Positions 17,688 through 61,400 of a DNA stretch of 64,000 bases are shown here, in pieces. A model generated the notes under the pieces. That model was not told the origin of the DNA. It saw only the letters and a list, made by a program, of their open reading frames with translations, and did not search any database. The translations under genes were made by a program, and so were the position numbers. This DNA comes from Mytilus trossulus. Lineage: Eukaryota. Positions within the stretch are counted from its first letter, which is position 1; each line of letters opens with the position of its first letter. The DNA is taken from contig NC_086380.1 in NCBI RefSeq assembly GCF_036588685.1, positions 46,128,001 to 46,192,000 of the forward strand. The letters run 5' to 3'.

Positions 17688-18557
17688 CTGAATTTCTTAT
17701 GTTTTAACATACTGTAAAGAATTGTAAGCCAAGCACTTTAGCTGGCTACAAGTCAGCAATAGCTTTAATACATTCATCTAAAGATAGAATTTCTATTAAC
17801 ATGGATTTGCGTAACTTAATTAAAGGATTGTACAACATTAATCCACCAATAAGGCAGTTGGCGCCAAATTGGGATTTGCCGTTGGTTTTGCAAGTGTTAA
17901 CAAAGACACCTTTTGAACCACTAGAAGAAGCAGAATTGAAATATTTAACCTTAAAGACAGTTTTTTTTATGGCATTAGCTTCTGCTGCAAGAGTCAGTGA
18001 AATACACAGTTTCACTATTAATGACAAACATTTCAGGAAAGAGCAAAGAGGTATACGGTTGTTGCCAAATATGCAATTTCTTGCTAAAACTCAAACTTTG
18101 AATAAACCATGGGAACCAGTATTCATTCCCAAATTTGAAAACTATGCTACAGATCCAAAGGATTTACTGCTGTGCCATTGTAGAGCACTACTAGCTTATA
18201 TTAAAAGAACTGAAGTTTTGCGCAAATCACAAAGACTCTTTGTAACATATCAAAAGAATCATCATGTAGAGGCTTCTAAGAATTCCATTGCACGATGGAT
18301 TGTGAACACGGTTAAATATGCATATGAACATGCAGATACAGACACACCAGTTTGTGAGAGCTCATGATACAAGAAAGCTCTCAACTTCTTGGGCTTTATT
18401 CAATGGACTTTCCTCTCAAGAAATTTTAAGAGCAGCTCATTGGTCAAATGAGACAACATTCACCTCATATTACTTGAAAGATGTACCAGATTTGGAATCT
18501 CGCTTTGCAAAAGCTGCAATTTTGCATACAGCTAACAGAAGACAGAAGAAGTATTAA
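17500..18557 (+). pseudogene. Inner DIRS tyrosine recombinase (one premature stop at 17705-17707, one frameshift near 18345)
   Basis: ARKQSTQTVY...W; catalytic set AARVSE (R), HDTR (HxxR), HW and SYYL (Y); its frame is open upstream to 15356, overlapping the whole RT ORF. Confidence 0.9.
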
Positions 18558-31702: not shown

Positions 31703-33057
31703 TTAGTGATTCTCAATTCACAGTTTTATGTCTCAAATTGCAAAATATTGCTACCCTTAGCGATAAAAGAGGGACGAAAAATACCAAAGAGACAGTCAAA
31801 CTCATAAATCTAAAATAAACTGACAACGTCATGGCTAATGAAAAATAAAAATGAAAACAGACAAACAATAGTACACACGACACAACATGAATTCCACCTA
31901 AAACTATGGTACTGGATAATATCTTAAGGCAGATAAATCCCAAATCAAAGCTTTTATGTTTGACCCAAGACAACTAATAGTGCAGCTTTTAATGAAAGCT
32001 ACTACTGCAGCTTTTTATGAAAGCTACTACTTTGTGTATAAAATGACAAGCAAGGCAAAATCAGAATGGACAGAACTGGGATAGATACCAAATGACACTA
32101 TGCATCAATAAAATGCTTATATGCAGGTCAATTCTCAATAATGAATATTTGCATATTTTTCAAGGCGGTCATTTTTTTAAAAGCCGCCATTTTGTTTTTC
32201 AAAAAAGATCAAAACAAAATCTTTCTAAGTACACCTTGTCATTCAAATATGTTGATTTTTGTGCACCCAGCATCAAATCCACTGTGGTTTGTGAAAAATT
32301 TGATTTTTTTGGAACGTACGGCAGCCATCTTGAAATAAGCCGCCATTTTGAATTTTGAGGTTGGGTCCATAGCTAATATTGCTCAGTACACAAAAATGTA
32401 CTATCATGCAAAAATTGGCGCTTTCCTCATAATTTGAGCAATTTTTTCACCGATCGGCCGGACTAAATGCTTACGTAAAGACATAAGGCCCTTTAATAAT
32501 CGTTGAACAACTGGCAGTTGTTCTAGCACGGACATTTGGCATATAAAAGACGCGTAAATTACTTCTGTGTCAAACAAATACATCGATAGGATGAAATCAC
32601 TATGTGCGTTATATATCAGAGCGAAATTGACGTTTGTTTTTAGTTGTCATTGATAATAACGGCTTAAAACGGTCAAGTTCAATTCGTAACTTTAATTGAA
32701 TATAAAACTTTATGAACTCCATTCATTTTAAGGCAGTGAAGTTTTAAGTACACAAATAAGTGTTTATTACTATAAGTGACATACACATTATGGCCAATAT
32801 GGTCAATTTTACCTGAAAGGTTATCAACGAAAAAATCGTTATATTAATCATGTTAAGGATGCTTCCTCCTCTTGTTTTAGAATTTTCGAAATTTCTCTTG
32901 CTTTAGATATTCGGAATCCTCTGGTTTATCCATATATCACCATTGCCCGCTACCCCCCTACTTTTCTTATCCTTATTTAATTAAATGTTTTTGACATATA
33001 ACATTTGTCAATGCTAAATGTACGGAAGCCCTGGAGTGCCATGCAAAAAAAAAAATT

Positions 33058-33400
33058 CAACTTGTGCGCACAAGTTACCAACTTGCGCGCACAAGTTACA
33101 AACTTGCGCGCACAAGTTACTATCTTGTGCGCACAAGTTACACAACTTGTGCGCACGAGTTACACAACTTGTGCGCACGAGTTACTATCTTGTGCGCACA
33201 AGTTACACAACTTGCGCGCACAAGTTACTATCTTGTGCGCACAAGTTACACAACTTGTGCGCACGAGTTACACAACTTGTGCGCACGAGTTACTATCTTG
33301 TGCGCACAAGTTACACAACTTGCGCGCACAAGTTACTATCTTGTGCGCACAAGTTACTATCTTGTGCGCACAAGTTACTATCTTGTGCACACGAGTTATT
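33058..33400 (+). repeat. Left subterminal array of 21-22-bp units with palindromic core AACTTGTGCGCACAAGTT
   Basis: About 16 units; explains the spurious repetitive ORFs at 33005-33446. Confidence 0.92.
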
Positions 33401-34999
33401 TAATATGTGCGCACGATTATTTGAGCCCTTATTGACATGCGCGTGATTTGTACATTGCGGATTTCTTGCTTGGATGAAGTTTATGAAGAAAGGTTAGTTT
33501 AATGATATTTAATCAATGTGACATAATGCATGGATGTTAAATGTCTGCATTTGTGAACACAATCTATGTAGCCACCGTTAGGAGCCGCGGTCTGAGACTT
33601 ATACTTTTCAACAACCATACTAATTCATGCTTTTTTCGTTATTGGAGATAAAAATGTTTTAAGAACGGTCAAATCATAAACCACAACCTTATTAACCCGA
33701 ATAATCCAGTCGTTATATTACGATCACTACGACCACTCCATTACCTCTGAGCACAATGATCATAAGGGTGCGTTGTTATTATTCAAGTTACAACCTTATT
33801 ACAAATTCAACAATTATGGGCTTAAGCTGACAAAATAACATTTTCCAAGTATTTGGTCCAATCGCATTCTTGTCGATTTCACATTGACAAAAAAAAAACT
33901 AATGCATTAGAGAAATAATGACCCGGGAAAAGTGAGCATAAACTGAATGTCCGAAACGTATTTGGTATGTATAATACTTCTAAAATCATTTCAGGTTATG
34001 AGAGTTTACCTCTTACTCTAACCTCAAAAATCATATTTAATCTATGTTTAAACTGTTAAAACGGGTACATATAAAATAAGAGTGGAAATCGAAACCAAAA
34101 CAAACAAAACGCAACGAAACAAAAAGAAAGGGAAAATGAAGAAACGAAATACAACCGAAATCAAAACTATAGATTAAAATTTTAACCCAATAGCACTTTA
34201 AGAATCCAACCCTTTAGTTTTATGCAATCATTCAATTGTGTGGTGTCCTTGATAGTTTTCATTGTTACAACTACGTTAAAACAGTAGGCTGTATATTTAA
34301 GGAAATATCCCTATTATCTCTTATTTGATGGTCTCTAAATTGATGATTGCAAATGCATTTACACTTTTCTACAAAACTGTGTGGATGTGCAGTACGTGTA
34401 ACGTACAATATAACATTTGATATTCAAGAATACTTTTTACGGACTTTGTCTTTGATCCTATCGGCTATCCTTATATGGGTAAATTTGAAGCGTGAGAAAA
34501 AAGTTCATGTCTTTGAAGTTTTCTAAAATGTATTCAGCACCAGGTGTTGCACGAGCCTCAGCCGGGTATACATGTATATAAAAGAGATATTATTGTTCAA
34601 ATGTTATAACTCAAAATAGAGCCAACTGAGAAGGAAAAGGTAATGTACGTACATTTTAGAATTATTTGACGGTGTTTTACACATTTTGATGTTGCGTTAT
34701 TTCCAGTTTCAGTAGCAAACAAGCTGATATTTGAATGGCTAAATAAATAGAAGATTTTAGTAGTCCGGGTCAATATATATAAATTAACCTAGAATACTTT
34801 ATAAGTATATTGTTCAAGAAAAGTATGATAAAATCATAATTCATAAATATCGACAAATAATAACAGTGCAAAACTTTACCTTTATATACCTTATATACTT
34901 ATTTTATAAATGCATTTAATTTAAAACCGATTATCCCAATTTTAACCAACTTGACTCTAACTCTTAACTTAAAACAATTATAGATCCCAAGTATAAATT

Positions 35000-35298
35000 T
35001 TTTTATGTCCCATTTATGGACATTATGTTTTCTTGTCTCTGCGCCCGTCTGTTCGTTCATCTGTCTGTCCGTTCGTCCGTCTGTCCCGCTTCAGGTTAAA
35101 GTTTTTGGTCGAGGTAGTTTTTGATGAAGTTGAAGTCCAATCAACTTGAAACTTAGTAAACATGTTCCCTATGATACGATCTTAATAATTTTAATTTCAA
35201 TGCCAAATTAGAGATTTCCCCCCATTTTCAGGGTCCACTGAACAAAGAAAATGATAGTGCGGATGGGACATCCGTGTACTGGGGACACATTCTTGTTT
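35000..35298 (+). mobile_element. Short Helentron-like (HINE) element
   Basis: 5' hairpin ATGTCC..GGACAT, (GTCC/GTCT)n microsatellite, 3' GTGT..ACAC hairpin followed by TTCTTGTT. Confidence 0.6.
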
Positions 35299-36534
35299 TC
35301 TATATAAAGAAAAATAATGGAATTGCGAACATAAGGTCCACATTGGTCAATTATCTATTGTCTATATAATTATATCTTGGGGAATACCCCGTTATTCTGA
35401 TACCCCAGTAGTCCGACACCCCAATAGTTAGACACCTTATTGGCCCGACACCCCACAAGTCCGAAACCCCTTTATCACGAATGTGACCTACCGATTTCGA
35501 CTATTTACCCCTATTTGTAGCATTTTTACTTTTGTGTCTGTTTGTTTTGTTTACGCCTCATTATCAATATTATAATATTTGACTATTGATTATGTACCTA
35601 GCCTAGCTGCTTAATAGATCTAGGTAGCAGCTAGGCTAGATACACGTTCATCAGTCAAAAATCTACGTAGCCCTATGTAGCTGTTACGATATTGCACGGC
35701 ACGCAACCCCGTTAAAAACATGCGGCAGTTTAAAAGGTGTTTCGTTCGAACTAGTTAGTGTCTAGAATCGATAACGAAACAATAAGCGACGACGAGCTTG
35801 AACACGGTTGTCGTCCCTTAATTTTCGTTATCCTCGAAAATATTTTCCTTGGTGTGGACAGTGTTACTTACCAATTTATTTCATACCCTTTCACAATTCA
35901 TTTCTTCACCCCTTCAACATACAATTGTCCATATTGTGAGTTAGATCTGATGAGGTTTTGGATAATTTTGATATAATTTGTCTAAATTTTCTAATTGTCT
36001 AAAAGAAATGCACCACGGAATAACTTCTGTTCTCGGGCCATATATAAGGTAGACCCTCTTGCAAAATGGATTACTGTTTTAAAATGGTTCTTTAATATTC
36101 TCTGCAAATGTGCAGGTTGATTTCGATTTAATATGCATTTCTTATGTTTCAAAATTGGTATCCGAAATATTTATTTTAAAATATTTATGAACAAAGAATG
36201 TACTTGCGTAGAAATTCGATATCAATAAGATTCCCCACCATTTAAGATGAGGGGCAGCTGTTTTAGGTCCGTGATTTTGTTAAATTTTTCGAACCATTTG
36301 TTATTATTGAAATTAAAAGAACGGTGAGTAATTTGGATCAAGATTTAGATTTAAAAAAAAACAGTTCTATGGAAACTGGTTAGTAAATTACTAATTGATT
36401 ATCGTTAGCTTTCACTTCTATAAAATTGGGTAAAACAGACTTCTTTGAGTTTCCTTTCCGAAGTAGGGAGCTTCATTGCTGACAGGTGAACAACAATACT
36501 TCAATTATAAATTTATTTTTTTATGTTATTTCAG

Positions 36535-36615
36535 ATGTCTGAACCTGACCTTTATGACTTCATGAGAAGTCGCAATATTAAAGATGATATTATAAGAACA
36601 TTGATAGAGGAAAAG
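36535..36615 (+). CDS. Transposon-borne SAM-HECT protein, coding exon 1 (N-terminal half of a SAM-like domain)
   Basis: TTTCAG|ATG; MSEPDLYDFMRSRNIKDDIIRTLIEEK|GTAAAC, phase 0; joins in frame to the acceptor before 39624. Confidence 0.75.
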
Positions 36616-37587
36616 GTAAACTTATTCATCAAAATGATTTTTTATTTAGTCCTTACATTTTATGCCTGATGGAGAGTTGTCTCATTGGAAATCATACAAC
36701 ATTTGCATCAATAGAGGGCATAACATCCTGATTTTATGTTTGTTTAATCTTAATTTTAGAGACATTTCGCTTTTGTTATACATCGACATATCTCTTTTTT
36801 AGTTCAGTTTTAAAAGTCCATCAACGACAAACATATTTGGGATACCTTTGATTGTCTATGTCAATTTCTAACACAAGACGATTTTTGTCTCGCTTGTGTT
36901 GAAAGTCTATTATTCGAGACACCAGGACTACTAAACAGTGATGGTGTAAACTATTTTTATAAATCTTTTTTTTCCCCATGGTGCCTCACATTGTAGGATG
37001 GTGAGATCGAATTACCGTCTGCTATATGTCCATTCACGGTCTTTGATTTAATTTCATTGTTCATAGTTAAATGCTAAGTTTTTTTGTGTTTTGGTCTGTT
37101 TATCATTTACTTAATCTTTAAGCTAGCAATAGGTGAGCTATACTTTTGATATATGGGATTATTGAATGATGTACCTGTTTGTCTGGAAGGTATCATATCT
37201 TCCTCATTTTTATGGTTCATTGTTCAATGTTAAGTTTATGTGTTATGGTTTGTTTTTTCAGTACTTTAAGGAGAAGTTCAACTATGAACATATCTGTCTG
37301 GCAGATATCAACCTTGGCCTCATTTTCATGGTTCATTGGTCAATGTTAAATTATTGGTTTCGGTTTGTTTTTCAGTTACCAATTAAAGTAATAGGTGGGC
37401 TATATTTGGTGTATGGAATAGTTGTAGGGTGTACACTTGGCCTCATTGTCATGGATCTTTACAAATTACAAACGTAACGGTTAATGTAATACTTATTTAA
37501 GAAATTTGCACGAGAACTGTATGTTTTAATGCAGTGTCTGTGCGTACCAGCATGCAGGTACTAATAGTCAGATTGCCGTTCGTAGGC

Positions 37588-38115
37588 TAAACTGGACCCC
37601 TGTTGTGTTCACTTATCGCTACACTGACAACAGGTATGGCCTAAATCCCGTGGTCACAATTCTGACCACGGGATTTGATAATTCGACGAGACTAGTGCAT
37701 CATGTGCTATGTTTATTATGTGTTATATAGTCTGGGGTCCTGGCTAATCTTGTCAGTATACGACGCGCAGCTAGATTGGGCCGGATCCCAGGCAAGAAAC
37801 AAGAAATTATCACATTTATAACCCTACTGAGATGTTAAGGGAATAAAAGATACCGGTTCAGTTTTTCAAGAACATGTTAACATGCTTGTTGGTCATTTAT
37901 CTGCACCACCACCATGGGGATACCAGATACTTATTTATTTTGCGGCATCACAGTAATAACATTTCACGGAGGTCAATTTCCTATCATTATAATTGGTCAA
38001 TTTTATTAGCGAATCGATGAATTTTTAAAACTCGTCCAATTAATGCCAATGTGACAATGGCACACCAACCTGTTCCTTCGGTGCAAAGCTATAGATGGAA
38101 CGGCGGACCAGTTTA
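37588..38115. mobile_element. MITE nested in the left TIR of the 37530-39554 element
   Basis: TIR TAAACTGG / CCAGTTTA; 9-bp TSD TTCGTAGGC (37579-37587, 38116-38124). Confidence 0.75.
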
Positions 38116-38238
38116 TTCGTAGGCTACGCGTACCCACATCCGGTTATAAAATAAAAATGCTATCGGATCGGAAATAAAACGTGAAATATGATTAAATTTA
38201 TACGGAATTTGTCGTAATTAGAGAATAGATTACAACTA

Positions 38239-38241
<3 letters not shown>

Positions 38242-38273
<32 letters not shown>

Positions 38274-38677
38274 CTCGTCTAAACATCAACCCAACAATGT
38301 TAGATCTGTAAATTTGCTTTCGCAAATTTTTGGTTCTTCCCTCGTCGGGATTCGAACCCATGCTACTGTGATATCGTGACACCAAATCGCCTGCACTGCA
38401 GCCGTCCCGCTAGACCACACGACCACCTGGGCTCTCAAAAAAAAAGAGCTTTCGGTGGGCATGTGTTACCTTTCCACGTCAGTTTTAATCTAGCGGCGTA
38501 CTACAGTACATGATATATAAGGCATGAAGATGTTATTGTTACAGATCAGCTAAATTATCTATAGTAGAGGATCCTACAAATTAATGTAAGATACAATCAC
38601 AGAAAATAATTATATTCATAAGTACGTCTGAGTCAGTGACAACCCTACAACAGATGTATCCATCGGATATATATATA
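38242..38677 (-). mobile_element. Retroposon with an internal tRNA-like module, embedded in (TA)n
   Basis: Minus strand has A-box-like GTGGTCGTGTGGTCTAG and B-box GGTTCGAATCC (~38340-38435); (TA)n on both sides. Confidence 0.65.
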
Positions 38678-39623
38678 GGTACGTGAACAGTTTTTTCTCA
38701 GTTAATAAAAATTCTTTAAATGGAAGAGTGTGATATACATGTGGGGAAGACATTTCGTAGTTAGTTTTGAACAAAAACTATCAGTCGATTAATTTTATAC
38801 AATTATATATAAAAAAAAAACCTCGGGAGTCAATTGCAGTTGCAGAGAAGAGAAGAACGGGAAAATAAATAAATAAAAAGGATTTAAAGTTTAACAGATT
38901 TAAATTGTAATGTGTATCAAATGTCAGAAAACCTCAGTTCACGATAAGGACTCTTTGTCCTGTGATTGTTGTTAGGACTGGCAACACTTGAAATGTGCAG
39001 GGTTCGGAAAAATGTGCCAAAACAATCCTATTGGATATGATGGTAAAATTTGTTCCAAATCTTAATTAGTTACATGAATCTTTTAAAATTGGTTTATTTT
39101 GACACTATTACTTGCTTCTTTAATTCTTATATAGACATCCAAGCTTTAATTTTAGTAGTATAAGATATTTCAAAATTTCAGTTTCTGTTTTACATTTTAC
39201 TAAAATCTCATATGGGTATTTTTAAAATTCAGATATATATAATTCTTTAAATTCTTTTCATTTACAGGGACTGTACAGTTTCATTTACCATCAGTGTGCA
39301 TTTAATTTGCAATGTATTATTACCTGATAAATACAATTTGAATTATATTTTTCATACTCTTCACTCGTTCTACACGAAATCGATAATCGAAATCCACATA
39401 TCATCGATAATTTCCGTTTATATTTCACGTTTCATTCCCGATCCGATAGCATTTTATTATAAAAACGGATGTTGGTACGCGTAGCCTACGATCGACTTTT
39501 TGACTATTCGAAAAAACCGACCGTACCCGCATGCGGATACGCGCAGACACTGCCATGTTTTAAACTTGATTATAAACCATCAATTTTGCATACCAATATT
39601 TTTATGCTCTTTGTCCATTTCAG

Positions 39624-41552
39624 ATAGATTCCCAAACTATCATTCACATGTCAGAAGAGGAATTGACAAAGTTTGTGCCGCTGTATGGGGATCGCAAAGC
39701 AATAATAGCGTTTAGCAGGGACAGAAAAGACACGTCTTGTGAAAAGAAAAAGAAGACAAAGACGTCGTTAATGAAAAAACTTCGGGCAAAAGTGAATGCA
39801 ATAAAGGGAGGGGCCTCTTATAGTAGTGGAGATGAGGATGAGGATGAAAAAGAGGTACGTAGTTCTTTGAGTAAGAAACTGAAAGGCAACAAGAACGCAG
39901 AAAAAAAGAAACGTCTTGTGGATCTAAGCTGTTTCCATAATGACGGTGATGCATATCATCAGATACGAGGAAACAAGGGCGGTGGCCCTAAGTCGTTTGA
40001 CATGGAAAAATTTGATACGATGGGACAAGTATTAGACCTTGCCAAACAGCTGTATTTTCCAAATGGACACAACGCAGTGAGAGGTAAAATCACGGAATAT
40101 GAGATAAAATTAACTGACACATATTTTCAAAACATCGACTTACAGTCTACCGTGGAGTCCTGTTATAATCGTTTAAAGATGAGACAATTGAGGTTCAACT
40201 TCTGCACAGAAGGCACTACTAGTACAATTGAGAGTGACGAGTTGCCACCTTTATCAATTCCAAAGAATAGGAATGCAACTGCTCAGAGTGGAGTTATTGA
40301 AGTAATGGAAATTATTGACTTGCCTCCAACCTGTTTAAGCAAACCTGAAAAATCAAATGACATTTTTGTCACTAATGATTTTTATAATGCAGAACTTCCG
40401 GATATCCAAACAAACTTTGATATTGCTGATTTTTCGTTCGACGGTGATATTGCATTTGGTCCTAATGTACGGGCAAGCAATGTAAGCTTAGACTCGACAT
40501 TACCATTAGAGAGTGGAAGTGGTGATACTTTGGACAGACCATTAGAATTTGGAAATGCTGGTACAGTGGAGAGAAAAATTATTCGTATACATAGGGCTTC
40601 AGCTTTAATGGATATGATAATTCATTTTAAAGATCCAAACATCATGACTGTAGACATTGATGCCATCATGGTATTAGACAATGGTAAGGAAGAAGCCGGA
40701 GAAGGAGATGGTGTTTTCAGAGATTGTATAACCCAGTTTTGGGATGAATTCTATGAACAATGCACAGAGGGTCGTATTTTCAAGGTACCTGTACTTAGGC
40801 ATGATTTCCAAAAGGAGGAATGGAAAGCTGTTAGTAGAATAATAAGAAAGGGGTTTGAAGTCAGTGGTTACTGGCCCATTTCAATTATGCCTGCTATATT
40901 CGAAGAGTGCATTCATGGAAGCATTGAATCAAGTCTGATTGAATTGTTTTCAGATTACTTACCTGAAATGGAAAGTCAGATTGTTAAAAAAGCTATTTCC
41001 AATTTCAATGATGTGGATCAAGATGACTTCCTTGAATTCCTTGATAGTCATTCTTGTAGAAAATTGGTGAATTCTGAAAATGTCCTGCCAATTATTGGAG
41101 AGTTGGCACATAAAGAGTTGATTCAACAACCACGCTACGTGATCGAATGTTTCCGTTCAGAATTACGACAGTTACAAGTCACTCCAGGCAAACTACAACA
41201 AATTTATCAAGAAATGAAACCAACATCTAAGGAAATTTTGAAATCCTTGAGTGTACCGGAAAACATGAAAGAAGCGGAAAGGCTATGTGCAGGCTTTTTA
41301 AAAAGATATATCAAAGATCTAGATGGAGAAAAACAAAAGGCTTTCTTGAGGTTCTGCACAGGTTCAGATGTCCTGCTGGGAATGAAAATAACGATTGAGT
41401 TTTTTGAATCTAAAGGGTTCACACGGTCACCAATAGCTCATACATGTGGGCGAGTATTACAAATTCCATCAACTTATGACACATATCCTTCTTTTAGGTC
41501 TGAGTTCAATTATCTGTTGAACAGTAAGGTTTGGGTAATGGACACAGTTTAG
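39624..41552 (+). CDS. Transposon-borne SAM-HECT E3 ubiquitin ligase (G2E3-like HECT), coding exon 2
   Basis: TTTCAG acceptor 24 nt upstream of the 634-aa ORF and in frame; HECT motifs EAGEGDGVFRD..FW..F, FLRFCTGS and catalytic PIAHTCG..L.IP; spliced product 669 aa. Confidence 0.88.
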   Translation: MDSQTIIHMSEEELTKFVPLYGDRKAIIAFSRDRKDTSCEKKKKTKTSLMKKLRAKVNAIKGGASYSSGDEDEDEKEVRSSLSKKLKGNKNAEKKKRLVDLSCFHNDGDAYHQIRGNKGGGPKSFDMEKFDTMGQVLDLAKQLYFPNGHNAVRGKITEYEIKLTDTYFQNIDLQSTVESCYNRLKMRQLRFNFCTEGTTSTIESDELPPLSIPKNRNATAQSGVIEVMEIIDLPPTCLSKPEKSNDIFVTNDFYNAELPDIQTNFDIADFSFDGDIAFGPNVRASNVSLDSTLPLESGSGDTLDRPLEFGNAGTVERKIIRIHRASALMDMIIHFKDPNIMTVDIDAIMVLDNGKEEAGEGDGVFRDCITQFWDEFYEQCTEGRIFKVPVLRHDFQKEEWKAVSRIIRKGFEVSGYWPISIMPAIFEECIHGSIESSLIELFSDYLPEMESQIVKKAISNFNDVDQDDFLEFLDSHSCRKLVNSENVLPIIGELAHKELIQQPRYVIECFRSELRQLQVTPGKLQQIYQEMKPTSKEILKSLSVPENMKEAERLCAGFLKRYIKDLDGEKQKAFLRFCTGSDVLLGMKITIEFFESKGFTRSPIAHTCGRVLQIPSTYDTYPSFRSEFNYLLNSKVWVMDTV

Positions 41553-42504
41553 AGTTCATATAGTGTAATAGTGCTGGCATTCCAGGATGTTCCGATGAAA
41601 ATGGACATTAACTCAATGTATGAGTACAGTTCTAAATGATTCAAGTATTCTTTGTTTAATAATTCATGTTTAAAGGAGGTTGTGTAATGATTTTGTGTAA
41701 TGATTTTATGTCGTGAGTTCGGCAGAGGGAGTTTTTTTCAAGTTTTTTTTTTTAAGTGTTCACAGTGTTGAACAGAAAAGCATTTCAGATTTATGTGAAC
41801 AATTTGTTCTGTGTTTGTTTATGTCCATTACCCAAACCTTACTGTTCAACAGTTTTGAGAGAAACACAAGCTGCATTAAAGTTTTGCCATAAAGGCAAGC
41901 CACTTGATTTTATTGTATTATTGTCAATATTGTTATGTTAAAATGATTTCAGTCAAATAGCAGTAGGTATTACTTTTTATTTACCTTGTCATTAACTATT
42001 TTGTTGTTTTATTTCAATTACAAGTTTCAGTGAATCTATTTCATTTAATTGTTAATTCCTCTTGCCATTAACGATTTTTTTCTCACTTTCTTCGGTCTTT
42101 GTTTCCCATTATTTTGATTCATGCGTAATCCTAAACATTTTTGAAGATCTTTTCTTACGCTTTAAGATTGATTTGGATCAAACTTGTAAATAATTATCCT
42201 CAGTTTATAATAGAAGAAAAGTATAATATACATAGTTATATCACAATATTGTATTGTTATCAGGCAAAAAATAGATAAATTTTCATCGATAAAATGATTT
42301 CCTTCTTATGCCTTTTCAGACCTGATTGGCGACCATTACTGAAATAAAATGTTCATCAGAATACACCATGTATCGTAAAAATTGATAGGAGCTATTTAAT
42401 TCAGGTCTTCGATTGAAATTTTGCTTAGATCAAATGTTTTAAAAGATGTTATTCGATAGTGGACATGACTTTGATACTTTATTGAAAAACATAGAATATA
42501 AAAA

Positions 42505-42676
42505 AGAAGATGGGGTATGATTGCCAATGAGACAACTATCCACAAAAGACCAAAATGACACAAACATTAACAACTTCAGGTCACCATACGGCCTTCAACA
42601 ATGAGCAAAGCCCATACCGCATAGTCAGCTATAAAAGGCCCCGATAAGACCATGTAAAACAATTCAAACGAGAAAG
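42505..42676 (-). repeat. Abundant SINE-like repeat (related copies ~12135-12340, 23580-23660, 30620-30685, 49968-50160, 56980-57280)
   Basis: Shared GGTATGATTGCCAATGAGACAACT and CATACCGCATAGTCAGCTATAAAAGGCCC segments. Confidence 0.7.
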
Positions 42677-43313
42677 ACTAAAGTTAGTGTTCATTTAGTG
42701 TATTTAAGAGCTTCCAAATGAGATAAAAATAAATCTCTCCTTAATTAAGAAGAATTCCTAGCGTAAAGCTTCCTAGCTTAAAACGTATAGTGATATACCT
42801 GTATCAACTTGATGAAGTTGCAAAGTTGTGATGCACAATTAACTGGTTACTATCAGAAGATTGGAAGTTATACAAACCCTATCGCTTTTTTATGTTGGTT
42901 TAGACAAAGCTTCTTTATGTTGGTTTAGACAGAGATTGTCATTGTTTACATGTATGGTAGAATAAATATATGTCTCTCGTTTAGGGGTACGAAGGGGGAC
43001 CTTCTTCTGTCATAGGTTTCCTCCTCCTTCTTTCCAATAATTGACCTTTTACAATTAACACTGGTTAGAGGCAACCTAAATTCGACCCATTTCTTCTTTT
43101 TATTTTAAGCTTATTTGCGTAGTGCTGTCCTTTGTTTGGTGTCTTGCTTTATTGTTACCAGTTGTGTTTTTGTTCCCGGTTTACTTTTGACACTTTGGTT
43201 TTCGCGTACTTCTTTACAATATCTGTTACAAGAAAATCTTTGGTATCGAGCCTTTCAATTTATCAGACAACAAAGACGCATTGCTTCATTTTTAGAAACG
43301 ACATCAACTGGTA

Positions 43314-43479
43314 CAGTGAAACCTGGTTAAACCGAATCCTGTATAACCGAAAACCTGTATTAACCAAACATGCTCTTAAGCTCTATCGTATCAAATTGTA
43401 TGCGTTAAGAACCTGACATCAACCAAAACCGAACCACATATTAAGTCCCGAAGAGGTTCTTTTTAAACAGGTTTCACTG
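43314..43479. mobile_element. Tc1/mariner(pogo)-like MITE
   Basis: TIR CAGTGAAACCTG / CAGGTTTCACTG; TA on the left flank, TT on the right. Confidence 0.65.
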
Positions 43480-45883
43480 TTCTAAGAATTATGTATTTAC
43501 AGCACAACACAGAAAGGGTTAAACAGATTACCCCTTTGGAAAGGGCACCTGGCCTAAAAGGTCCAGAGAGCTTTGCTATCACTTCAGTATGTGTCGTCGT
43601 CCGTTGTTACCGTTTCTGAGATATCTGCAAGTTTAATAGGTACTTCTAGTAATGTGGCATTGCTGTGTACTAAAAGTTGCATTACTTCTAGTTTGAAGAC
43701 TATGTTGAGGCCCTGCTCCTAGGGCATGATCCAGCGACTTTGAATGAACTACATTTTGCAAGTTACTTTTTCTGCTAACAGTAAAGGTAAAGGTAATATG
43801 TTTGGCTAGCTGAACCGTGAAGTCATTATGTTAGATATATCATCCTTCTTTCTGAGTAGTCTAGTCCTACAGACGGATAAATTGGTTTTTTGTCGGACTA
43901 GTCGTTTAAGTAAACTTAACTTAATGATGACTTAACGGTTCAGCTAGCAATCAAGCTAACCAAATACAAGTATATAACTTACACACTCGAATGTTTTGCT
44001 GTTAGTTAGTTTGATAGAAACTACTAAGATTTGCTATCAAGTTACAACATCACGGTTTGTACATCTCAATTTTTTTAACAGTTTGAGGCTCGAGATTATA
44101 GTCTAGTGACTTTGAATTAATAAGCAATAATCCTGTTCATCAGATTGGTGTTTTTTTTTCGAAACATATATCAGTGTCAACAATTTACATTTAACGTCGA
44201 GATTGAGCTGATGACCAAATATACAATAATTCCAGGCAGAAGTTTAACGGAAGGAGAAGGTGAATGTAATATAGCCACATATTGAGGAAAAAACTACAAA
44301 ATTACGTTTAATGGTCTGTCAATTAATGATTAATCCTCAAAATCAATCACAACCTTCGGTTTCTTTTTAATATGGAACCTTGTATAATATCATAAAAATG
44401 CATAGACTAATACAAAAGTTATTGCCCGGATACCAGAAATTCCTTTTTGTTGACCCCTATTACCTAAACTGTTTGGACCATAACCCCCGAATACAGTCCC
44501 ATCTGGTTAGTATTGCCGAACTGATGGTACAAATTAATACAAATCCATACACTTATATATACTCAAGTTTGACTACATTACATTCGCCTTCTCCGTCCGC
44601 TGCCCCGCAAATATTACCGTTACACTTTTCCATGAAACTTCTGTATGAAATTACTATAGGTCATGGGGATTTTCACATTCAACCTTTTATAGTAATATTC
44701 TTTACAAAGCACAAAAATGTCGGCATTAACCTTAAAAGCTATCAAAACCTGTAAACAAGACTTTTTCTATTTTTCTATAGTACAGTTACGATACTGTTGT
44801 CGGGTAATTATGGATGGTATATTTTGGCTTTGCTATTCTTTCACTTATAGGGTCTTTGCATTGGAAATAAACAGTTATGTTCTTAAGCCAGCTTTTGACC
44901 TGCTACGGGTTGTGTTCTTCTTAAATATTTTATGATGGTATGATACTAAACAAAAAAAAGGGAAGAATTGAGCTTGATATTCATTTGGTGAAAACATAAT
45001 CTTTCAATCATTTTAATTGAGGTCTAGAGCTGGCATGTCAGTAACTGCTAGTAGTCATTTATGTATAATTGTTATTTTGTTTTCTGCTCTTTGGCCAGGT
45101 TATTGTCTCTTTGTCAGATTCCCCATTTCCATTCTCAGTTTTATCAAGATATAGCCTGGGAATCCAAATGAATTCGGACGACTATGACGACATGGTCGTT
45201 ACATTAAGTCAATTAATGACTTAAATTGTAAATTCATCCCTTATTGGAGTAATTGTCATTAACAGATGCTGTTTACCGAATGTTGCGGTTTTTTGGGGGC
45301 AAAAACTGTGATGATTGTAATCATAAAACGGCATGTCGCATAGTAAGAGTATTACTAGTAATTCTATTCTTTAATACTTTGAGCAAATGATGCTCATCAG
45401 TACAATGTGCTTTAGGTATCATATATCACAGCATCACTGATGAAAGATATACACACCTAAAATTACGGGTCTTATCTTAATAAAAAAAATACTATTCCGG
45501 CTTCTTGTAATTTCAATTGACAAATATCACGAAGATGTCTAAACAATACTTAATTCAGGAAATGAGAAAAAAAATCGAAAGCTTGTAGTCAATTTCATAT
45601 TATAATACTGTTGATTTTGGAATTTGGTAAAACTTTAATACATTCTTTTCGGTGTCGGGTACGTCATGTGATGTGGTATATAATCTTAATCCGTGTCACC
45701 AGATGACCCCATTTTTTTTCATGTTCTATGCTATTGCATGGAACGTTGCCTCATTGACGCATGCCAAATAATCCGATTGTCTGTTCATGCTAAAACATTT
45801 TTCAAGTTGTATATGTTTAATGTAGAGAGATTTATTTTAGTAAATTTATAAATAAATATAATATTAATAAAACCAATATTGAA

Positions 45884-46204
45884 TTATAAATTTTGTTTTA
45901 TTATATCCCTCATTTGTAAATAAAGTGTGGCTCTGTCATAGGGATCTCTTGTTTTTGTCCAGCTGTTTTCCTCCATTAATATGTCAGCCAGGTCCAAAAT
46001 GTCATTGTCACAGTCTGAATCGTCGAAGTCACACTCCTCGGCACAAGCATTTAGTTCGACATTGTCCAAAGGTAGTGAATAATCCTCGGTGCCTTTCAAG
46101 AAAGGTGCCTGGTATAAGACCATTGGACGCCCGTTTATGTCGCAATGCTTCGATTTGCGAATTCGGTGTGCATTCCATGTTTCAACGACATTTTCAAGCT
46201 CTTT
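45884..46204 (-). CDS. IS3EU transposase, exon 2
   Basis: TTTCAG acceptor; KELENVVETWNAHRIR...GRPMVLY... to stop; phase 0 with exon 1. Confidence 0.85.
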   Translation of the reverse strand, partial: KELENVVETWNAHRIRKSKHCDINGRPMVLYQAPFLKGTEDYSLPLDNVELNACAEECDFDDSDCDNDILDLADILMEENSWTKTRDPYDRATLYLQMRDIIKQNL

Positions 46205-47209
46205 CTGAAATAGAAATAACTTGATAAAAGTGGTGTTAAAATGCATTCTCTTCGATTAAAATCTAATTTGTTTAATGAAGACACGTGCAGTTAATAGAGA
46301 CACATCTGGATGTAACTTGATGAAAAAGAAATAAATTACAGAAATAGCAATTGCGGATTTTATGATCGCCAAAAAATGTGTGGTCGTTTTGGTAGTACTT
46401 TGAGGCGTTTTTTTCTACATGGCACCGTGAAGTAACTGTATTTCTTCTTCACGGACCTACCTGAAATTATATCAGAATGCATTTATTTTGTTTGTATGAC
46501 GATTTTGGGATTAATGAAATTAGTGGGATTATTTTCTAATAAGTAGATGTGTATGTTGTTATGACGCGTCATGCGCTTCTTGAAAAATTCCAATGTCATC
46601 TAAGATTACAATCATTGAGTTCCTTAACTTGTTTGCACACAAGTTACCCACAGTCAGACGCCAAAGACTGTCTTATAGATAGGTGTTTTTTTCTGGCATG
46701 GAACCTTTTTTTCATGAAATTTACGTTTGCCTTTTTTTCTATTCATTTCACAATAACTTTTAAGCAAGTAGATTTAAGCTCGCGCTATATCTTTTTTTGC
46801 GAGATAAAAAGGGGATTGGGGTAAATTAGAACAATGCTGTTTATAATTTGAGAACTTATAGTTAAAGTCAGATTTAGATGGGATTATTTTTTGCGATAAG
46901 AATCCTTATGAAATTCCTGTTTAAATTTCATTTAACCGTTCTAACATAGCTTTTTTTTGTTTGTTTCAGAGATAAAAGGGTCAAAAGATAATTACAAGGG
47001 CCAGTGGTTGCAAATTTTTGGAAGAAAACATTGCCAGTTTAAGTCTTTATGTCTTTACGACTTTTTTTTATATAAAATGTCTCTTTCAAGTACGTTTTTA
47101 TACTGAAACATATAACATGTTAAACGTTTATCAAATTAAGCGTTTGGAATAGTTCTTCGTTGTTTCGTTTTGATTTAAGATGATATTTATATATCATATT
47201 CTATCTTAC

Positions 47210-48040
47210 TCTGATAATATCCATGAAAAAATATTGTATCAGACTTTTATCGATGAAGTCGCCTGTGAAGTAGCCGTCTTGCTTCATCTGTTCAAAGAAT
47301 TCCATCCAAAATTGTACACATTCTTTTCTAAGTATTCCCCACCAGCTCTCTATACGTTGATTGTGTTGACTTGTTCCATAGAGAAAAGCTGTTCTGCTTC
47401 CGGGACCATTCCTCCTTAAGAATGACTGCATTTCAGCAATATAACTGTTTTCGGTTCCCATGTCTGATCGTATTGAATGTGGTACCCTTTCTAAAGAAGT
47501 CAAAGCTTCTACATAAAATCCCGCTACAATTCGTGGGTTATTATTGCTTCTACCAACACGTAACCAAATTATAAACCTTGAAAACCCATCTATACATCCG
47601 TTGACACAAATTCCATACGGTTTTAACTTATCATATGAGTCAAGGTGCCATATGTAGTTGGGACCCTTGGATCTATAGTGCCTTCTTTTTAGTTTGCGCT
47701 TAACTCTCGCAGCAACGCCAGAAGGATCCAATATGCCTAATAGGATTCTTACCATCTCCTTTTGGACAATAAAACCATTCTGTAAGCATCTCGAATGCAT
47801 CCAACGGTATCCATGGAGACAACCAGATGACTTTAGTTGTTCGAAGATAAACATAGCAACTTGGAAAATATCCGAAAAATTCTTTCGTCTGTACAATCCA
47901 TACGAAGCTAAGCGTCTTTTCAAAGTTCTCATAGATAAAATAACATTATGTCTTTGAGCCAACAAACCAATAATTTCTTCATATTGCAAACCTAGGCTAA
48001 AGTAGGTTGAAATAATGATAGCTAAATCATTTGTGGTCAT
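47210..48040 (-). CDS. IS3EU DDE transposase, exon 1 (helical N-terminus and integrase core)
   Basis: ATG at 48040; GPNYIWHLDSYDKLKPYG..GCIDGFSR, RSDMGTEN and HNQRIESWW give the D-D-E triad; donor AGA|GTAAGA; spliced product 383 aa with no stops. Confidence 0.9.
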
Positions 48041-48894
48041 GATTATTTGATCTGACACCTGTAATAAAGTAAGCTGTTTAAAATGTGACTACTTCAATTC
48101 AAAGATTTGTAAACTAGTATTACTATCGAGCATCGTGGGTCGAATGTTAATCCTAAATGAGTATAATTGATCACAGTGACTAATGACTGGCGATAAGTAT
48201 CGCTAAAGAAACGAAACTTTGATGTGTCGTCATAGTAATAATCTATTTGTTACGGGTGTGGACCCCCCTTTTTAAAATGTCTGAATCCGCCCCTAGGATA
48301 AAATTTGGTATCAATGCCAGACGGCCGTTTCGTCTAAATTGTGGCTAGTTTATACAGCCATAACTAACATGACTAAGGCCATAAACATAGTATTGACTAG
48401 TTTTGGTACTCGATGAACATCGTTTCAATATCCTCTCAGTGACGTCGATGGTAATAAGATATACCGCCTATCTAATACACCAAAATGTTAAATGTTTATA
48501 TGTATCAAGTTAAGCAGCAAATAAGGAACGGTGTAATATGATACCCGTAGCCCATTCACGACACAATAATTTACACGACAGAAATAACATAACTTGAGTG
48601 TCAGTGCATTAAAACAAACTAAGTGTACCCCGGGGGGCCCTCTTACGAACAAATAACCCGTTTACATTGGAATTCATAAAAAAGGAATAAGAATTATAAG
48701 TTTCTTATTGAATAGTAACTTCGTTTTACACACTGTTCCTAATTACTTTTCTCTGAATTAATACAGTCAGTAAAATTCTACCTATGTTAAAAATTACCTT
48801 AATTTATAGAATGTTTGTCCGGCAGGATCGCCTTCCATAAAGCATAGTGTGCCCATGCTATAAACACGTGTAACTATTGATTACAATATACTAA

Positions 48895-49180
48895 CTACGA
48901 GTTACTAACTTGTGCGCGCAAGTTACTATCTTGTGCGCACAAGTTGGTAACTCGTGCGCACAAGTTGTGTAACTCGTGCGCACAAGTTGTGTAACTTGTG
49001 CGCACAAGATAGTAACTTGCGCGCACAAGTTAGTAACTCGTGCGCGCAAGTTTGTAACTCGTGCGCGCAAGTTATGTAACTTGTGCGCACAAGATAGTAA
49101 CTCGTGCGCGCAAGTTGTGTAACTCGTGCGCACAAGATAGTAACTTGTGCGCGCAAGTTGGTAACTTGTGCGCACAAGTT
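48895..49180 (-). repeat. Right subterminal palindrome array of the IS3EU element
   Basis: Reverse-complement counterpart of 33058-33400 with different unit order and number. Confidence 0.92.
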
Positions 49181-49292
49181 GAATTTTTTTTTTTGCATGG
49201 CACTCCAGGGCTTCCGTATTAATGTATGGAAAACTCTAGAGATAATCATTTCCCGCCAAATTTTCAATTGCTTATATCTTTTAAACAAACAC

Positions 49293-58472: not shown

Positions 58473-61400
58473 TGTAATGGCCTGACCACTAAGTATAACC
58501 GACGATTGGGCTCAAGCAGAAAAGACTATCAGGTGCTGATACTTTAATCAAGAGTCAATCTAACAAATGGTAAAAAGCTGAAAAACAAATAAAATACAAT
58601 TTTACAATGTGTTCAATTAATGTTATTATAACGAAATGTCAAAGGTAATTGATAGCACAGTCCGTTGAATGCAAGAAAATGTTGTACTTCAAGAACGGTT
58701 ACATTTCAAGTATTTCACGGAGAAAAGGTTCAAATATGTAGAGAGCAATTTGAACGGTTCAAATACAATGTTGTAGAATTTACTCACTCTGTTGTTAGCC
58801 ACGAATTGTGTCCAAGATGACGTCTCAACGAAATGTTCCTGGTGATCGTAATGACCTTGCAGTTTTCCTGTAACGGATACGTGAGAGTGAGGGAAAGGTA
58901 GCGACGGTATGATGTTTTAACGTTAAAGATGAGTAATCCTCCTAGACTGGAACACATAAACAGATTAAGAATATAATCAAACGAACTATATAAATTACGG
59001 AACGGTGTAACAGAATACTCCCCGTCTGATGTCTATCTGATATCACTATTCTATAAACTATTTGCGAATGAGAATAAGATCTAGATAAATGAATAAATCC
59101 CAATATAAATTGAATATATACAGATGAAATAACCACTATAGGTCGTGTGAGAAATATCACGTCTCAACTTACGACATTTCACTATAAAGTTTGCAGAATA
59201 GATTAATTCCACGGAAAACTGGGTTCGGCGCAGTTTCTTGTTCTTTGAAGAAGGATCTCTCTAATGCGGTTGCTGTGATTCGCAAAATGTTCCATAGTTG
59301 CTGTTGAGATAGTAGGAACTGTTTTCTCCAACGTTGTTAGACGGCGACGACGGTTGAAGGTGGTCCTCCGATGGGTATGACGAGAGCTAATACTTGATCC
59401 TATTCCAGTTTGGCGAAATGTCACATCTCTTTGAGTATCCAACGAAATTAAGCGTTTCGTTCTAACGTTCCATCTTGCTGATCCAGTTGTTCTATCTATG
59501 AAGTGGGGTCCTCTATGTTTGATTGTGTTGTAGTAATGTCCAAGAAAAGGTGTTACTTTCTGATGATGTCCAGATAAGACTACTGGTTCCTTTTCACTAA
59601 AATTCAAGTCAGATTTGGCAATTCTGCTTCCTCCTCGGAGTAGAGGTTGCTTGCTCAAAGGCATATTGATATTGGCAATAGGTTCTTCTATCGGAATATA
59701 TTTTTGAATGCTACTGATTTCCTCACCATGAACTTCAGGTCCTGTTGATTTCGGAATGAAGTTTTCTTTATCTATAGATTTTTCTATCGAGGTCAAAGAT
59801 TTTGCTTTTACTGACGCGAGTAATGTCCCTTTAGATGAATTAGTGCGTTTACCAGGCTTGGTACTAGGTCTTGTACATTCAAGGTATTGTATTGAATGCG
59901 ATTTTGCGACCTTGGCATTCGTTTGAAAGTTTTTGTCCTTAGACTGAACAACAATTGGATTATTGTCCTTGACGGCTATTTCCGGTCTTGAAGCAAGACG
60001 TTGTTTTGATTCCGTGATTGAAACGTTGGTTATCTTTGTGTTGACTTCAATAGGAACAGTTTGCTTGTCAATGTATGTATTTCCAATTATGACCCAACCA
60101 AGTCTCAACTTTTGGGCAAATGGAGTTCGGGATGGTCCTAGGCGTTGTTCAAGGACGTGGTGTGCCTCTATAAGGTCCCTTCCAATTAGGAGTAGAATTT
60201 GACAACGTTCCTCTAGTGGTGTAATGCTTCCTCTGAGTTCTGTCAGATGAGGATGATGCATTGCAACTTCAGGAGTAGGAATTTCGTCTCGATTATTGGG
60301 AATATTATTACATTCAATTAATGTAGGCAGATCAAACTGTACGTCACTATGTACAGATTTTATGACGAAATCTTTTCCTCTTTTCCCGGAAGTAGCTACT
60401 CTGCCGGAACATGTTGTAAGAGAGTAGTTTACAGGTTTCTCCCGAACGTTGAACAGACTGAAGAATTCAGGCGAGGCAAGAGACCGGTTGCTTTGGTCGT
60501 CAATAATGGCGTACATCCTGATAATTTTGTCTGTCTTGTCCTTGTGGTACACGTCGACAGGTAATATCTTAGCATACGACTTCTCGCTCTTATGATCTTT
60601 GTAGATCTCTGTGCAGATCGAACTCACAGAGGTTAACTTTGTTTCAGCTGACTCTGTCTGCTCCCCGCCGTAGACTTGTGTTAGCTCCCCGCCGTAGGCT
60701 TGTCTGGGTGAGCTAAACTGGGATTTTTCAGATTGTTGTGGTCTAGTGATGTGAAGTGCTGTGGTATGTCGTTCACTACCACACTCATTACAACTGATAC
60801 TTGCGTTGCAGTCCCGACTTCTGTGTGTGGTTGACTCACAACACTTGTAGCACACATTGTTTTGTCTTAACAGTTCCTTGCGTTCCTCGATTGGTTTGCC
60901 TCGGAATGCTCGGCATTCATTCAAGGTATGCTTTGTCTTGTGTAGGATACACAGATCTTGTTGTTGACTGCTGTCTTCAGTTTGCTGTTCAACAGCCGTC
61001 TTATGGACGTTGACTTTGGAGGACGTCTGAGGTGTGAACCTTGGCGTAGCGTCTTTTATATTTGATGTTGCTTTTGACCCAAAGATGAACCCAGGATCGT
61101 TCTTAATTTTGCTAATTTCCCTGATAAAGGCAGAGAATTCTGTGAAAGGTGGAAAGGCAACTTCATATTTAGACTTGAATCTTGAAGCCCTTGTAATCCA
61201 CTTTTCTTGGAGTCCGTATGGCAGTTTTTCCACAATAGGATTTATCCCGGACGAAGAGTCGAAATAAGCAAGCAAACATCCCAGCTTGGGATTTTCCTTG
61301 TGATATTCGATTTCCGATAGAATATCAGACAGTTCGTAGAGACGTGCGTTGTCCTTATTTGTTAAGGTAGGGAATTTTTCAAGTTTACTCTTGAGAGAGG

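Follow-up and report, generated by a model that had tools for sequence, protein, structure and literature searches.

The closest described systems to the element considered here are the IS3EU and GingerRoot transposons, and what follows about them draws on the accessible text of the papers cited. IS3EU elements have terminal inverted repeats (TIRs) of over 30 bp. They are described as having TA..TA termini and 6-bp target site duplications (TSDs) (Kojima 2023, PMC10045372), and their structure and function are said to be largely unexplored (PMC11934779). Fungal IS3EU elements have TAYGG..CCRTA ends, carry a TET/JBP dioxygenase that the authors read as a means of escape from silencing, and an alpha-kinase gene opposite to the transposase, with the accessory gene crossing transposon superfamilies (Kojima 2025, PMC12730594). 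GingerRoot elements, with TIRs of 100-150 bp, are widespread in aquatic animals and are reported to carry gene fragments (2019, PMC6839031). Here we describe an element of this type in the mussel Mytilus trossulus. The window that we analyzed is a stretch of 64,000 nucleotides (NC_086380.1, positions 46,128,001 to 46,192,000), and its positions 33021-49218 are a single 16.2-kb IS3EU/GingerRoot-type cut-and-paste DNA transposon that encodes, opposite its DDE transposase, a predicted HECT ubiquitin ligase. The pairing of these two genes is a property of the transposon lineage, not of one copy. We are very nearly certain of what the element is and of how the ligase folds; what the ligase does for the transposon is a question on which our preference is more tentative.

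The anatomy of the element agrees closely with what the sequence-only reading of this window had proposed. The TIRs (33021-33120 and 49119-49218) are 96% identical over 100 nt, the termini read TACGG...CCGTA (in full, TACGGAAGCC...GGCTTCCGTA), and the flanking TSDs match at five of six positions. Internal to the unique part of each end are subterminal repeat arrays that span 341 bp on the left and 281 bp on the right, whose 21-bp units are likely to serve as putative binding sites of the transposase. Two convergent genes, each interrupted by one phase-0 GT..AG intron, encode a 383-aa DDE transposase on the minus strand and a 669-aa HECT protein on the plus strand that keeps the PIAHTC motif, as had been described. 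The IS3EU assignment likewise stands, through a PF24764 transposase, 6-bp TSDs and ends of the TAYGG..CCRTA form; the long TIRs fit GingerRoot. Comparison of the five non-coding parts of the element with 17 related loci by tblastx and blastn gave no sign of a third gene, and no open reading frame (ORF) of 80 aa or more in these parts has any relative.

Copies of the element elsewhere in the M. trossulus genome establish that it belongs to a real and very recently active family of cut-and-paste transposons. A six-frame genome search with transposase exon 1, in which 136 of 239 candidate matches were scored, recovered at least 18 places at 98-100% amino acid identity. The HECT frame is open over 634 aa at 10 places (99-100% amino acid identity) and broken or partial at about eight more. 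Both genes are intact, with an open HECT frame and an open transposase exon 1 at 99-100% amino acid identity, in 10 copies including that of the window, and transposase exon 2 is open and 100% identical in 12. The sequence-only reading had proposed to test on genomic copies how often the two genes co-occur: the HECT gene is on the same contig in 17 of 18 family copies and convergent within 6.5 kb in 16. At those 16 places the HECT match is 5.6-6.4 kb off on the opposite strand, and in most young copies the spacing is exactly 5655 bp. In the copy at C2:56.18 Mb the HECT match lies about 27 kb from the transposase, and the copy at C5:17.03 Mb (L015), an internal-deletion derivative of 3165 bp, lacks the HECT gene.

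Among the 10 copies with both ends read, the 6-bp TSD is perfect in eight (GTTTCC, AATTCA, TTATCC, GTTTTA, TCTTTT, TGAAAT, GCATTT and AGAAAG) and matches at five of six positions in two, the window copy and a copy on C7; an eleventh copy, on C10, which is about 0.9 kb longer and has its HECT-side end unread, is left out of this count. The terminal 28 nt show no mismatch at any terminus found in the scanned loci. Identity to the window at the DNA level is 99.06-99.90% over 4.7-4.9 kb for nine HECT-region loci and 99.41-100% over 3.0-3.5 kb for eleven transposase-region loci. An older set (L013, L014, L016-L018, L041 and L042) is 96.2-98.2% identical, and in it the HECT frames are interrupted by stops, cut short or split. 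When the genome was searched with the terminal 100 nt and 40 of 165 candidates were scored, at least about 43 whole termini were found, including pairs 0.4, 0.5, 2.5, 3.1 and 4.6 kb apart that mark short internal-deletion derivatives. The window copy is an autonomous-looking member of this very young two-gene family.

That the two TIR arrays might be separate insertions, with the genes caught between them by chance, would be compatible with the imperfect TSD of the window copy and with the left-flank search, which found no empty-site allele. In that search (32600-33020) all matches end short of the insertion point, so that no paralogous empty site was found; they comprise repeats 68-79% alike over most of the length, together with short matches of 85-94% to one internal segment of 46 nt. 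The genome, however, has the same 16.2-kb unit with the same ends at 10 places, where each copy is flanked by a 6-bp TSD of its own, perfect in eight. This rules out separate insertions, to which we attach a vanishingly small probability.

Several copies lie close to one another. At C14:15879627-15912168 (L011, L012, L065 and L066) two full copies stand tail to tail, about 130-145 bp apart, each within its own perfect TSD (TCTTTT and TGAAAT). A young copy adjoins an older one at 49.77-49.80 Mb of C14, and extra termini lie at C3 20378609-20378810, 1.7 kb from a full copy. These neighbors suggest local hopping, or a preference for sites beside a resident copy.

The HECT gene is transcribed and spliced. 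In the public sequencing run X1, a 2173-letter contig joins 36535-36613 to 39622-41698, which also gives a 3' untranslated region of at least 146 nt; in run X2, from another study and under another organism code, a 937-letter contig has the same 36613/39622 joint. Both skip 3008 letters, with GT..AG borders when the cut is placed 2 nt on, and the junction 36615/39624 that had been predicted from the sequence is thereby confirmed. The splice is seen in two of the four runs compared: run X4 shows no joint and the DNA-like run X19 is unspliced across both intron borders. The gene itself is present in 19 runs from eight studies with four organism codes. Its frame is 100% identical to NCBI LOC134710525 of M. 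trossulus. The X1 contig starts exactly at 36535 (the ATG), just after an acceptor-like TTATTTCAG, and the NCBI model begins four codons earlier, with an ATG at 36523; it is possible that there is a further 5' exon, perhaps near the left end.

The sequence-only reading had also seen many secondary insertions in introns and spacers. High-copy repeats are indeed present within the HECT intron, but they are not secondary to the window copy. The repeat at 38138-38734 lies inside a 4.9-kb stretch common to nine other young copies at 99.06-99.90% identity, and since the young copies share both this repeat and the 5655-bp gene spacing, at least these two belong to the family itself. In all four runs, contig depth in the intron segments 36667-36744, 37143-37341 and 38138-38734 ranges from hundreds up to about 30,000, while the exons have depths of 6-22; the segments are nested high-copy repeats.

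The pairing of HECT gene and transposase extends well beyond this family. In a subfamily of the same genome, represented by six loci with transposases 55-57% identical to that of the window, a HECT relative lies beside the transposase at five. These HECT relatives are 32-50% identical and mostly broken, and the arrangement and the intron position are unchanged. Linkage was further assessed on metagenome contigs, where a scan with the HECT alignment gave 80 loci; taxa were taken from the source names of proteins. Thirty-one of the 80 contigs also encode a transposase, and in all 31 it lies downstream of the HECT gene on the opposite strand, that is, convergently. Where at least 2 kb of sequence follows the 3' end of the HECT match, the transposase is found in 26 of 29 contigs (the misses are L125, L135 and L136); where at least 2 kb precedes the HECT gene, it is never found upstream (0 of 25). 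One of these contigs, L071, holds a complete 7.7-kb element with TACGAAAGCC...GGCTTTCGTA ends (TACGA..TCGTA), a perfect TSD (ATATTG) and subterminal arrays built of a different repeat unit, and in two others (L070 and L112) arrays are likewise present at either side.

Relatives of the HECT protein are numerous: an exhaustive search gave 2428 representative clusters at E<=0.001, of which 1269 reach E<=1e-10 and 367 reach E<=1e-30. Bivalves, gastropods, teleosts and beetles are represented among those with names, along with a sea cucumber and a coral, and among the listed relatives with a source name there is no canonical cellular HECT ligase. The HECT intron is at the same place in every relative checked, including the distant L070 and L149. 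To judge from these comparisons, the HECT gene appears to have accompanied transposases of this kind in molluscs, fish, insects, echinoderms and cnidarians.

A few open frames that encode HECT alone, 353-374 aa long and with 25-28% identity to the ligase of the window, have no transposase match listed nearby (C15:1569245-1570243, C6:15066839-15067837, C6:26105111-26106127 and C5:26499420-26500412). These may reflect the limit of the transposase search (136 of 239 candidates scored), other IS3EU lineages, or ligases that have left the transposon.

Measures of selection had to be taken from pairs of loci outside the mussel family, whose copies are too alike and decay neutrally after insertion. 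The only pair with a usable ratio of nonsynonymous to synonymous divergence (dN/dS) is L083/L119, at 0.205 for HECT and 0.089 for the transposase. For L070/L073 the HECT dN is 0.319 and dS 3.5; in the other seven of the nine HECT pairs dN is 0.26-0.64 with dS saturated, and over the remaining pairs in general dN is 0.24-0.64. By these sequence comparisons the HECT gene is kept by purifying selection. The description of the ligase as a selected accessory gene, advanced from the sequence of the window, has gained from the pairing in a diverged subfamily, the linkage in 26 of 29 contigs, a dN far below dS, an invariant cysteine and a spliced mRNA.

It might still be supposed that the HECT gene is no more than a passenger, acquired by the family from a host and of no use to the element, as the gene fragments reported in the accessible text on GingerRoot (PMC6839031) would allow. 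Transcription and splicing, purifying selection and conserved co-travel argue that the gene serves the element instead. A passenger would hardly be paired with the transposase both in a subfamily diverged to 55-57% and in 21 distinct metagenome lineages, nor have a dN so far below dS; neither the lack of a canonical cellular HECT ligase among the source-named relatives listed nor the intron position common to L070 and L149 fits such an origin. We therefore consider a passenger very improbable. Recent capture of a host gene is contradicted by the conserved pairing, the low dN relative to dS and the shared intron position.

The protein itself has the makings of a ubiquitin ligase. The exons were searched separately, and the full-length fold was taken from the NCBI model P0001. 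Its AlphaFold model has a mean predicted local distance difference test score (pLDDT) of 77.4 and three folded parts: five helices in residues 10-68 (pLDDT ~90), a beta-rich domain at 125-230, and residues 345-668 (pLDDT ~94), with a disordered stretch at 231-343. From the N terminus, the architecture thus modeled begins with a helical bundle; a basic linker leads to a ubiquitin-like domain, and a disordered linker to the HECT domain. The Pfam HECT profile matches with E 1.8e-7 and 31.6 bits (gathering cut-off 23.9) over the C lobe only, and a firefly relative (P0019) covers positions 35-284 of its 306 with E 4.5e-13. In Foldseek the HECT domain of HUWE1 (6xz1_A) matches with E 5.3e-12, among 104 matches at E<=0.001 with identities of 12-16%; VIA-align places UBR5 at Z 22.0 (317 residues aligned, root-mean-square deviation (rmsd) 4.5), Rsp5 at Z 20.1, HECTD3 at Z 18.7 and E6AP at Z 17.1.

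HECT ligases ubiquitinate through a cysteine thioester. All 23 aligned relatives keep T638 and C639 of the AHTC motif, and P634, A636 and H637 are invariant or nearly so. A profile search aligns the TC of the motif on the TC of UBE3C and Tom1, which we take to hold the HECT catalytic cysteine, and the motif at the start of the N lobe, E.G.D.GGV.RD, is kept. In the predicted structure this is a complete two-lobed HECT fold with a conserved cysteine, and on that model the ligase would be enzymatically active. Alternatively, the protein could be a non-catalytic scaffold or adaptor, in which HECT fold, ubiquitin-like domain and bundle merely bind host factors or the proteasome. Its weak sequence similarity to active HECT ligases would suit such a role, as would the C-terminal tail VWVMDTV, which differs from canonical HECT tails; the invariance of T638 and C639, the near-invariance of their neighbors and the preserved N-lobe motif speak for catalysis, and we judge a scaffold improbable.

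The ubiquitin-like domain, which lies between the N-terminal bundle and the HECT domain, had been overlooked in the sequence-only reading. Folded alone (window 39882-40235) it reaches a pLDDT of 90.2. VIA-align finds the polycomb ULD at Z 9.6 (rmsd 2.3, 80 aligned) and Ring1B RAWUL, Atg12, the USP11 UBL, SUMO and ISG15 at Z 7.7-9.2; ubiquitin-like domains make up most of the 50 rows listed, at Z values near the level that the method regards as common. The best Foldseek match has E 4.9e-4, and the matches listed there are also mostly ubiquitin-like. We regard the domain as a predicted ubiquitin-like one at the level of fold class only. In the ESM Atlas it meets just an unnamed mollusc cluster, with a score of 0.79. 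The SAM label formerly given to the N terminus stays a tentative one: none of four full-length relatives matches a Pfam SAM family at E<=1, and a profile of the four N-termini run against the PDB reaches SAM chains only at the sub-threshold E values of 0.078, 0.11 and 0.37 (three of 11 hits), where we take 2dkz_A and 3k1r_B to be SAM chains, their molecule names not saying so. The Lys/Arg-rich linker hints that the ligase may be nuclear.

The transposase is of a familiar kind. Beside the PF24764 match, exon 1 matches rve (PF00665) with E 2.6e-4, under the Pfam cut-off. The DDE residues are D134 (47639-47641), D193 (47462-47464) and E231 (47348-47350), spaced 59 and 38 residues apart in the motifs WHLDSY, IRSDMG and QRIESW, which are kept in aligned homologues. 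Exon 2 is colinear with residues 198-263 of P0036 (an NCBI mussel model) and 299-402 of P0035 (clam), and in relatives such as L074, L084 and L111 the exon-1 and exon-2 matches abut without an intron; the junction 47210/46204 is a predicted one, supported by these colinear gene models and intronless relatives. Its length of 383 aa is like that of relatives (380-422 aa). These number more than 1152 and come from clams, oysters, gastropods, fireflies, other beetles, crinoids, sea cucumbers and fish; the named ones carry just 'integrase core domain' labels. The coordinates of all features are collected in the table.

Table. Features of the two-gene transposon, in window positions.
Feature	Position	Strand	Basis
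Left TSD, TAAATG	33015..33020	.	5/6 match to TTAATG at 49219-49224
Left terminus, unique TIR part, starts TACGGAAGCC	33021..33057	+	End reading, TIR comparison
Left subterminal array, 16 copies of 21-bp unit, palindromic core ACTTGTGCGCACAAGT	33058..33398	+	Tandem Repeats Finder (TRF): period 21, 16.0 copies, 87% matches
HECT exon 1, 27 aa, first half of SAM-like helical bundle	36535..36615	+	X1 contig covers 36535-36613, joined to 39622
HECT intron, 3008 nt, GT..AG, phase 0; nested repeats ~36667+, 37143-37341, 38138-38734	36616..39623	+	Joint in X1 and X2
HECT exon 2, 642 aa + stop	39624..41552	+	Open frame; X1 contig to 41698
Ubiquitin-like (beta-grasp) domain, predicted	39903..40220	+	Model and fold search
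HECT domain, N lobe + C lobe	40563..41534	+	Pfam HECT, Foldseek, VIA-align
Predicted catalytic cysteine codon, Cys635 of the 669-aa protein, in PIAHTC	41445..41447	+	Alignment column
Transposase exon 2, 106 aa + stop	45884..46204	-	Open frame; colinear with NCBI models
Transposase intron, 1005 nt, GT..AG, phase 0	46205..47209	-	Splice letters 47210/GTAAGA ... TTTCAG/46204
Transposase exon 1, 277 aa from first ATG, integrase-like DDE core	47210..48040	-	PF24764, E 1.1e-27
Right subterminal array, 13.2 copies of 21-bp unit	48900..49180	-	TRF
Right terminus, finishing GGCTTCCGTA	49182..49218	-	End reading, TIR comparison
Right TSD, TTAATG	49219..49224	.	End reading

The histories of the two genes agree in part. 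Both gene trees show the same deep split, between long proteins with the SAM-like and ubiquitin-like parts and short HECT-only ones, and they share four tip pairs; the HECT data, however, reject three clades that the transposase supports (approximately unbiased test, p-AU 0.008, 0.0004 and 0.0007). The comparison of the two phylogenies that the sequence-only reading had called for has a mixed outcome. Across all 32 loci, HECT and transposase distances correlate with r 0.68 (0 of 5000 permutations as high), a value driven by near-duplicates; after thinning to 21 loci r is 0.146 (603 of 5000 as high), which is not significant, and the Spearman coefficient is 0.018 (2021 of 5000 as high). An overall co-phylogeny of the two genes was dropped, as the correlation is gone once near-duplicates are removed.

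We read the conflicts between the trees as exchange of partners between co-resident IS3EU lineages; alternatively, they may stem from chimeric metagenome contigs. For L105, the HECT gene falls in one group with L106 and L146 (support 99/98) and the transposase in another with L083, L119, L074 and L075 (100/97). A branch of 1.63 changes per column leads to a clade, far from the rest, of the transposases of L082, L106 and L146. L105 is likely a case of swapped partners. Furthermore, the HECT-bearing clade (97/92 support) includes, nested within it, three mussel IS3EU transposases that have no HECT match in their vicinity. At one of them (L024, C7:49001130-49004948) the transposase is an intronless 401-aa protein, and the ligase-side 8.2 kb (L158, C7:48993000-49001200) has no large ORF, just low-complexity frames. 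The nesting of these HECT-less lineages indicates that the ligase has been lost, or was never needed, in some lineages.

These observations bear on what the ligase might do. In the mechanism that we propose, the transposase would bind the terminal sequence and the 21-bp subterminal repeats, excise the element and reinsert it with a 6-bp staggered cut; the binding and the chemistry are those expected from the family, and the TSDs are observed. The ligase would be an active nuclear E3 that ubiquitinates host proteins, whether silencing, chromatin or repair factors, and this would let the element transpose or stay expressed. The HECT-less IS3EU elements in the same genome indicate that IS3EU chemistry as such can do without the ligase. 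A ligase that is both dispensable and exchangeable, a module like the TET gene of fungi, favors a host-directed role over a transposase-directed one, and by the same analogy the exchange of partners between HECT and transposase would fit a portable accessory module with a host-directed role. We lean to this mechanism tentatively, as a possibility that falls somewhat short of an even chance.

It is also possible, if somewhat less probable, that the ligase ubiquitinates the element's own transposase, either as self-restraint or to have p97 and the proteasome remove a stable post-integration complex so that the 6-bp gaps can be repaired. ClpX acts likewise on the phage Mu complex, and the ligase would then be an element-encoded counterpart. 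A partnership of this sort would account for genes that without exception lie near each other in convergent orientation (31 of 31 contigs, with a spacing of 5655 bp in most family copies) and for a pairing kept over deep transposase divergence, including the clade on the 1.63-changes-per-column branch. The protein-binding modules of the ligase, helical bundle and ubiquitin-like domain, come without a recognizable substrate-specific domain, which would suit it as well. It is harder to reconcile with the HECT-less IS3EU elements nested among HECT-bearing ones in the same genome, and with the plant GingerRoot and fungal IS3EU papers, whose accessible text does not mention HECT; the transposase does not need HECT in general. 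Moreover, conflict at three supported places between the trees is unexpected for tightly co-adapted partners.

Several points weigh against the host-directed mechanism. A role on the transposase would fit the same data, and no result separates the two; the fixed convergent arrangement in 31 of 31 contigs could equally mean tight co-regulation of one machine. The window sequence holds nothing that points to a particular host target, and the loss of the distance correlation after thinning belongs here too. The ligase activity that the mechanism requires is likewise conditional: in sequence the protein resembles solved HECT domains only weakly (best E 2e-5, 12-16% identity), so that catalytic competence rests on the fold and the conserved motif. 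Finally, the RNA status of runs X1 and X2 is a software guess, and the spliced contigs are the sole sign of transcription.

Two other parts of the window deserve mention. Overlapping ORFs of 443, 579 and 783 aa at 12554-17707 (+) and 9940-11148 (+) have no Pfam match at E<=1e-5 and lie just downstream of a reverse-transcriptase ORF (RVT_1, E 5e-11); the ORFs of 9940-17707 are probably a retroelement with unrecognized proteins. At 59203-63108 (-), the G+C-richest part of the window (0.42-0.43 against ~0.35), there is a 1301-aa ORF with no Pfam match at E<=1e-5.

Known helpers carried by transposons include DNA-binding proteins and, in fungi, a demethylase. If the ligase is a working part of the element, this would be the first transposon-encoded ubiquitin ligase system. 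Were it to act on host factors, animal cut-and-paste transposons would be using a tactic of viruses and pathogens, protein degradation turned on defenses; were it to act on the transposase, it would be a eukaryotic answer to the removal of integrase-type complexes after integration. It is tempting to speculate more broadly, if with limited confidence, that animal IS3EU elements carry the ligase as a working part that destroys restricting host proteins or clears the transposase from the integration site, and that in this superfamily the slot opposite the transposase is a general place for protein-modifying enzymes, taken in rust fungi by an alpha-kinase and in animals by a HECT ligase. The mussel family, being young and expressed, with 10 near-identical intact copies and natural deletion derivatives, offers a practical test system. 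Our data also call for caution in annotation: among the proteins labeled 'HECT domain-containing' or 'uncharacterized' in gene sets of fish, molluscs, insects, echinoderms and corals, hundreds are probably encoded by transposon genes.

We found no paper that joins IS3EU with HECT; Repbase, Dfam and supplements lay outside the search, and the pairing may be catalogued there. The words HECT and ubiquitin are absent from the accessible text of PMC10045372, PMC12730594, PMC11934779, PMC6839031 and bioRxiv 2021.09.26.461848, and judged from titles and the starts of abstracts, the searchable literature holds no relevant paper on a transposon-encoded HECT ubiquitin ligase.

Set beside the known systems, as far as the accessible accounts of IS3EU and GingerRoot describe them, the mussel element shares their PF24764/rve DDE transposase, 6-bp TSD, TA..TA ends, long TIRs and spread among aquatic animals, and differs in its HECT gene, its long 21-bp arrays and its 16-kb size, which those accounts do not describe. 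With the fungal IS3EU elements, on the same partial basis, it has in common the superfamily, the end motif, an enzyme gene opposite the transposase and an accessory that moves between lineages. The enzymes in fungi are a dioxygenase and a kinase, whereas in animals the enzyme is a HECT ligase; and while the fungal accessory gene crosses superfamilies, HECT exchange is seen here only among IS3EU-type transposases.

The ligase resembles the cellular HECT E3s (UBR5, HUWE1, Rsp5/NEDD4, E6AP and HECTD3) in its two-lobed fold, its cysteine motif and the motif at the start of the N lobe. It differs from them in being only 12-16% identical and in its N-terminal architecture of helical bundle and ubiquitin-like domain; unlike theirs, its gene is multi-copy, lies between transposon ends and is patchy over phyla. 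PIF/Harbinger elements also have two genes, a transposase and a Myb-like protein that binds DNA and brings the transposase to the ends. They are alike in being cut-and-paste elements that keep a second gene long-term, but the second protein here is an enzyme of the ubiquitin system. Parasite-encoded E3s used against host defenses, with known substrates, include ICP0 of herpesvirus and the bacterial HECT-like SopA and NleL; these viral proteins and secreted effectors are the model on which the proposed host-directed role is built. The mussel element likewise encodes a predicted ubiquitin ligase of its own, with the difference that the carrier is a DNA transposon.

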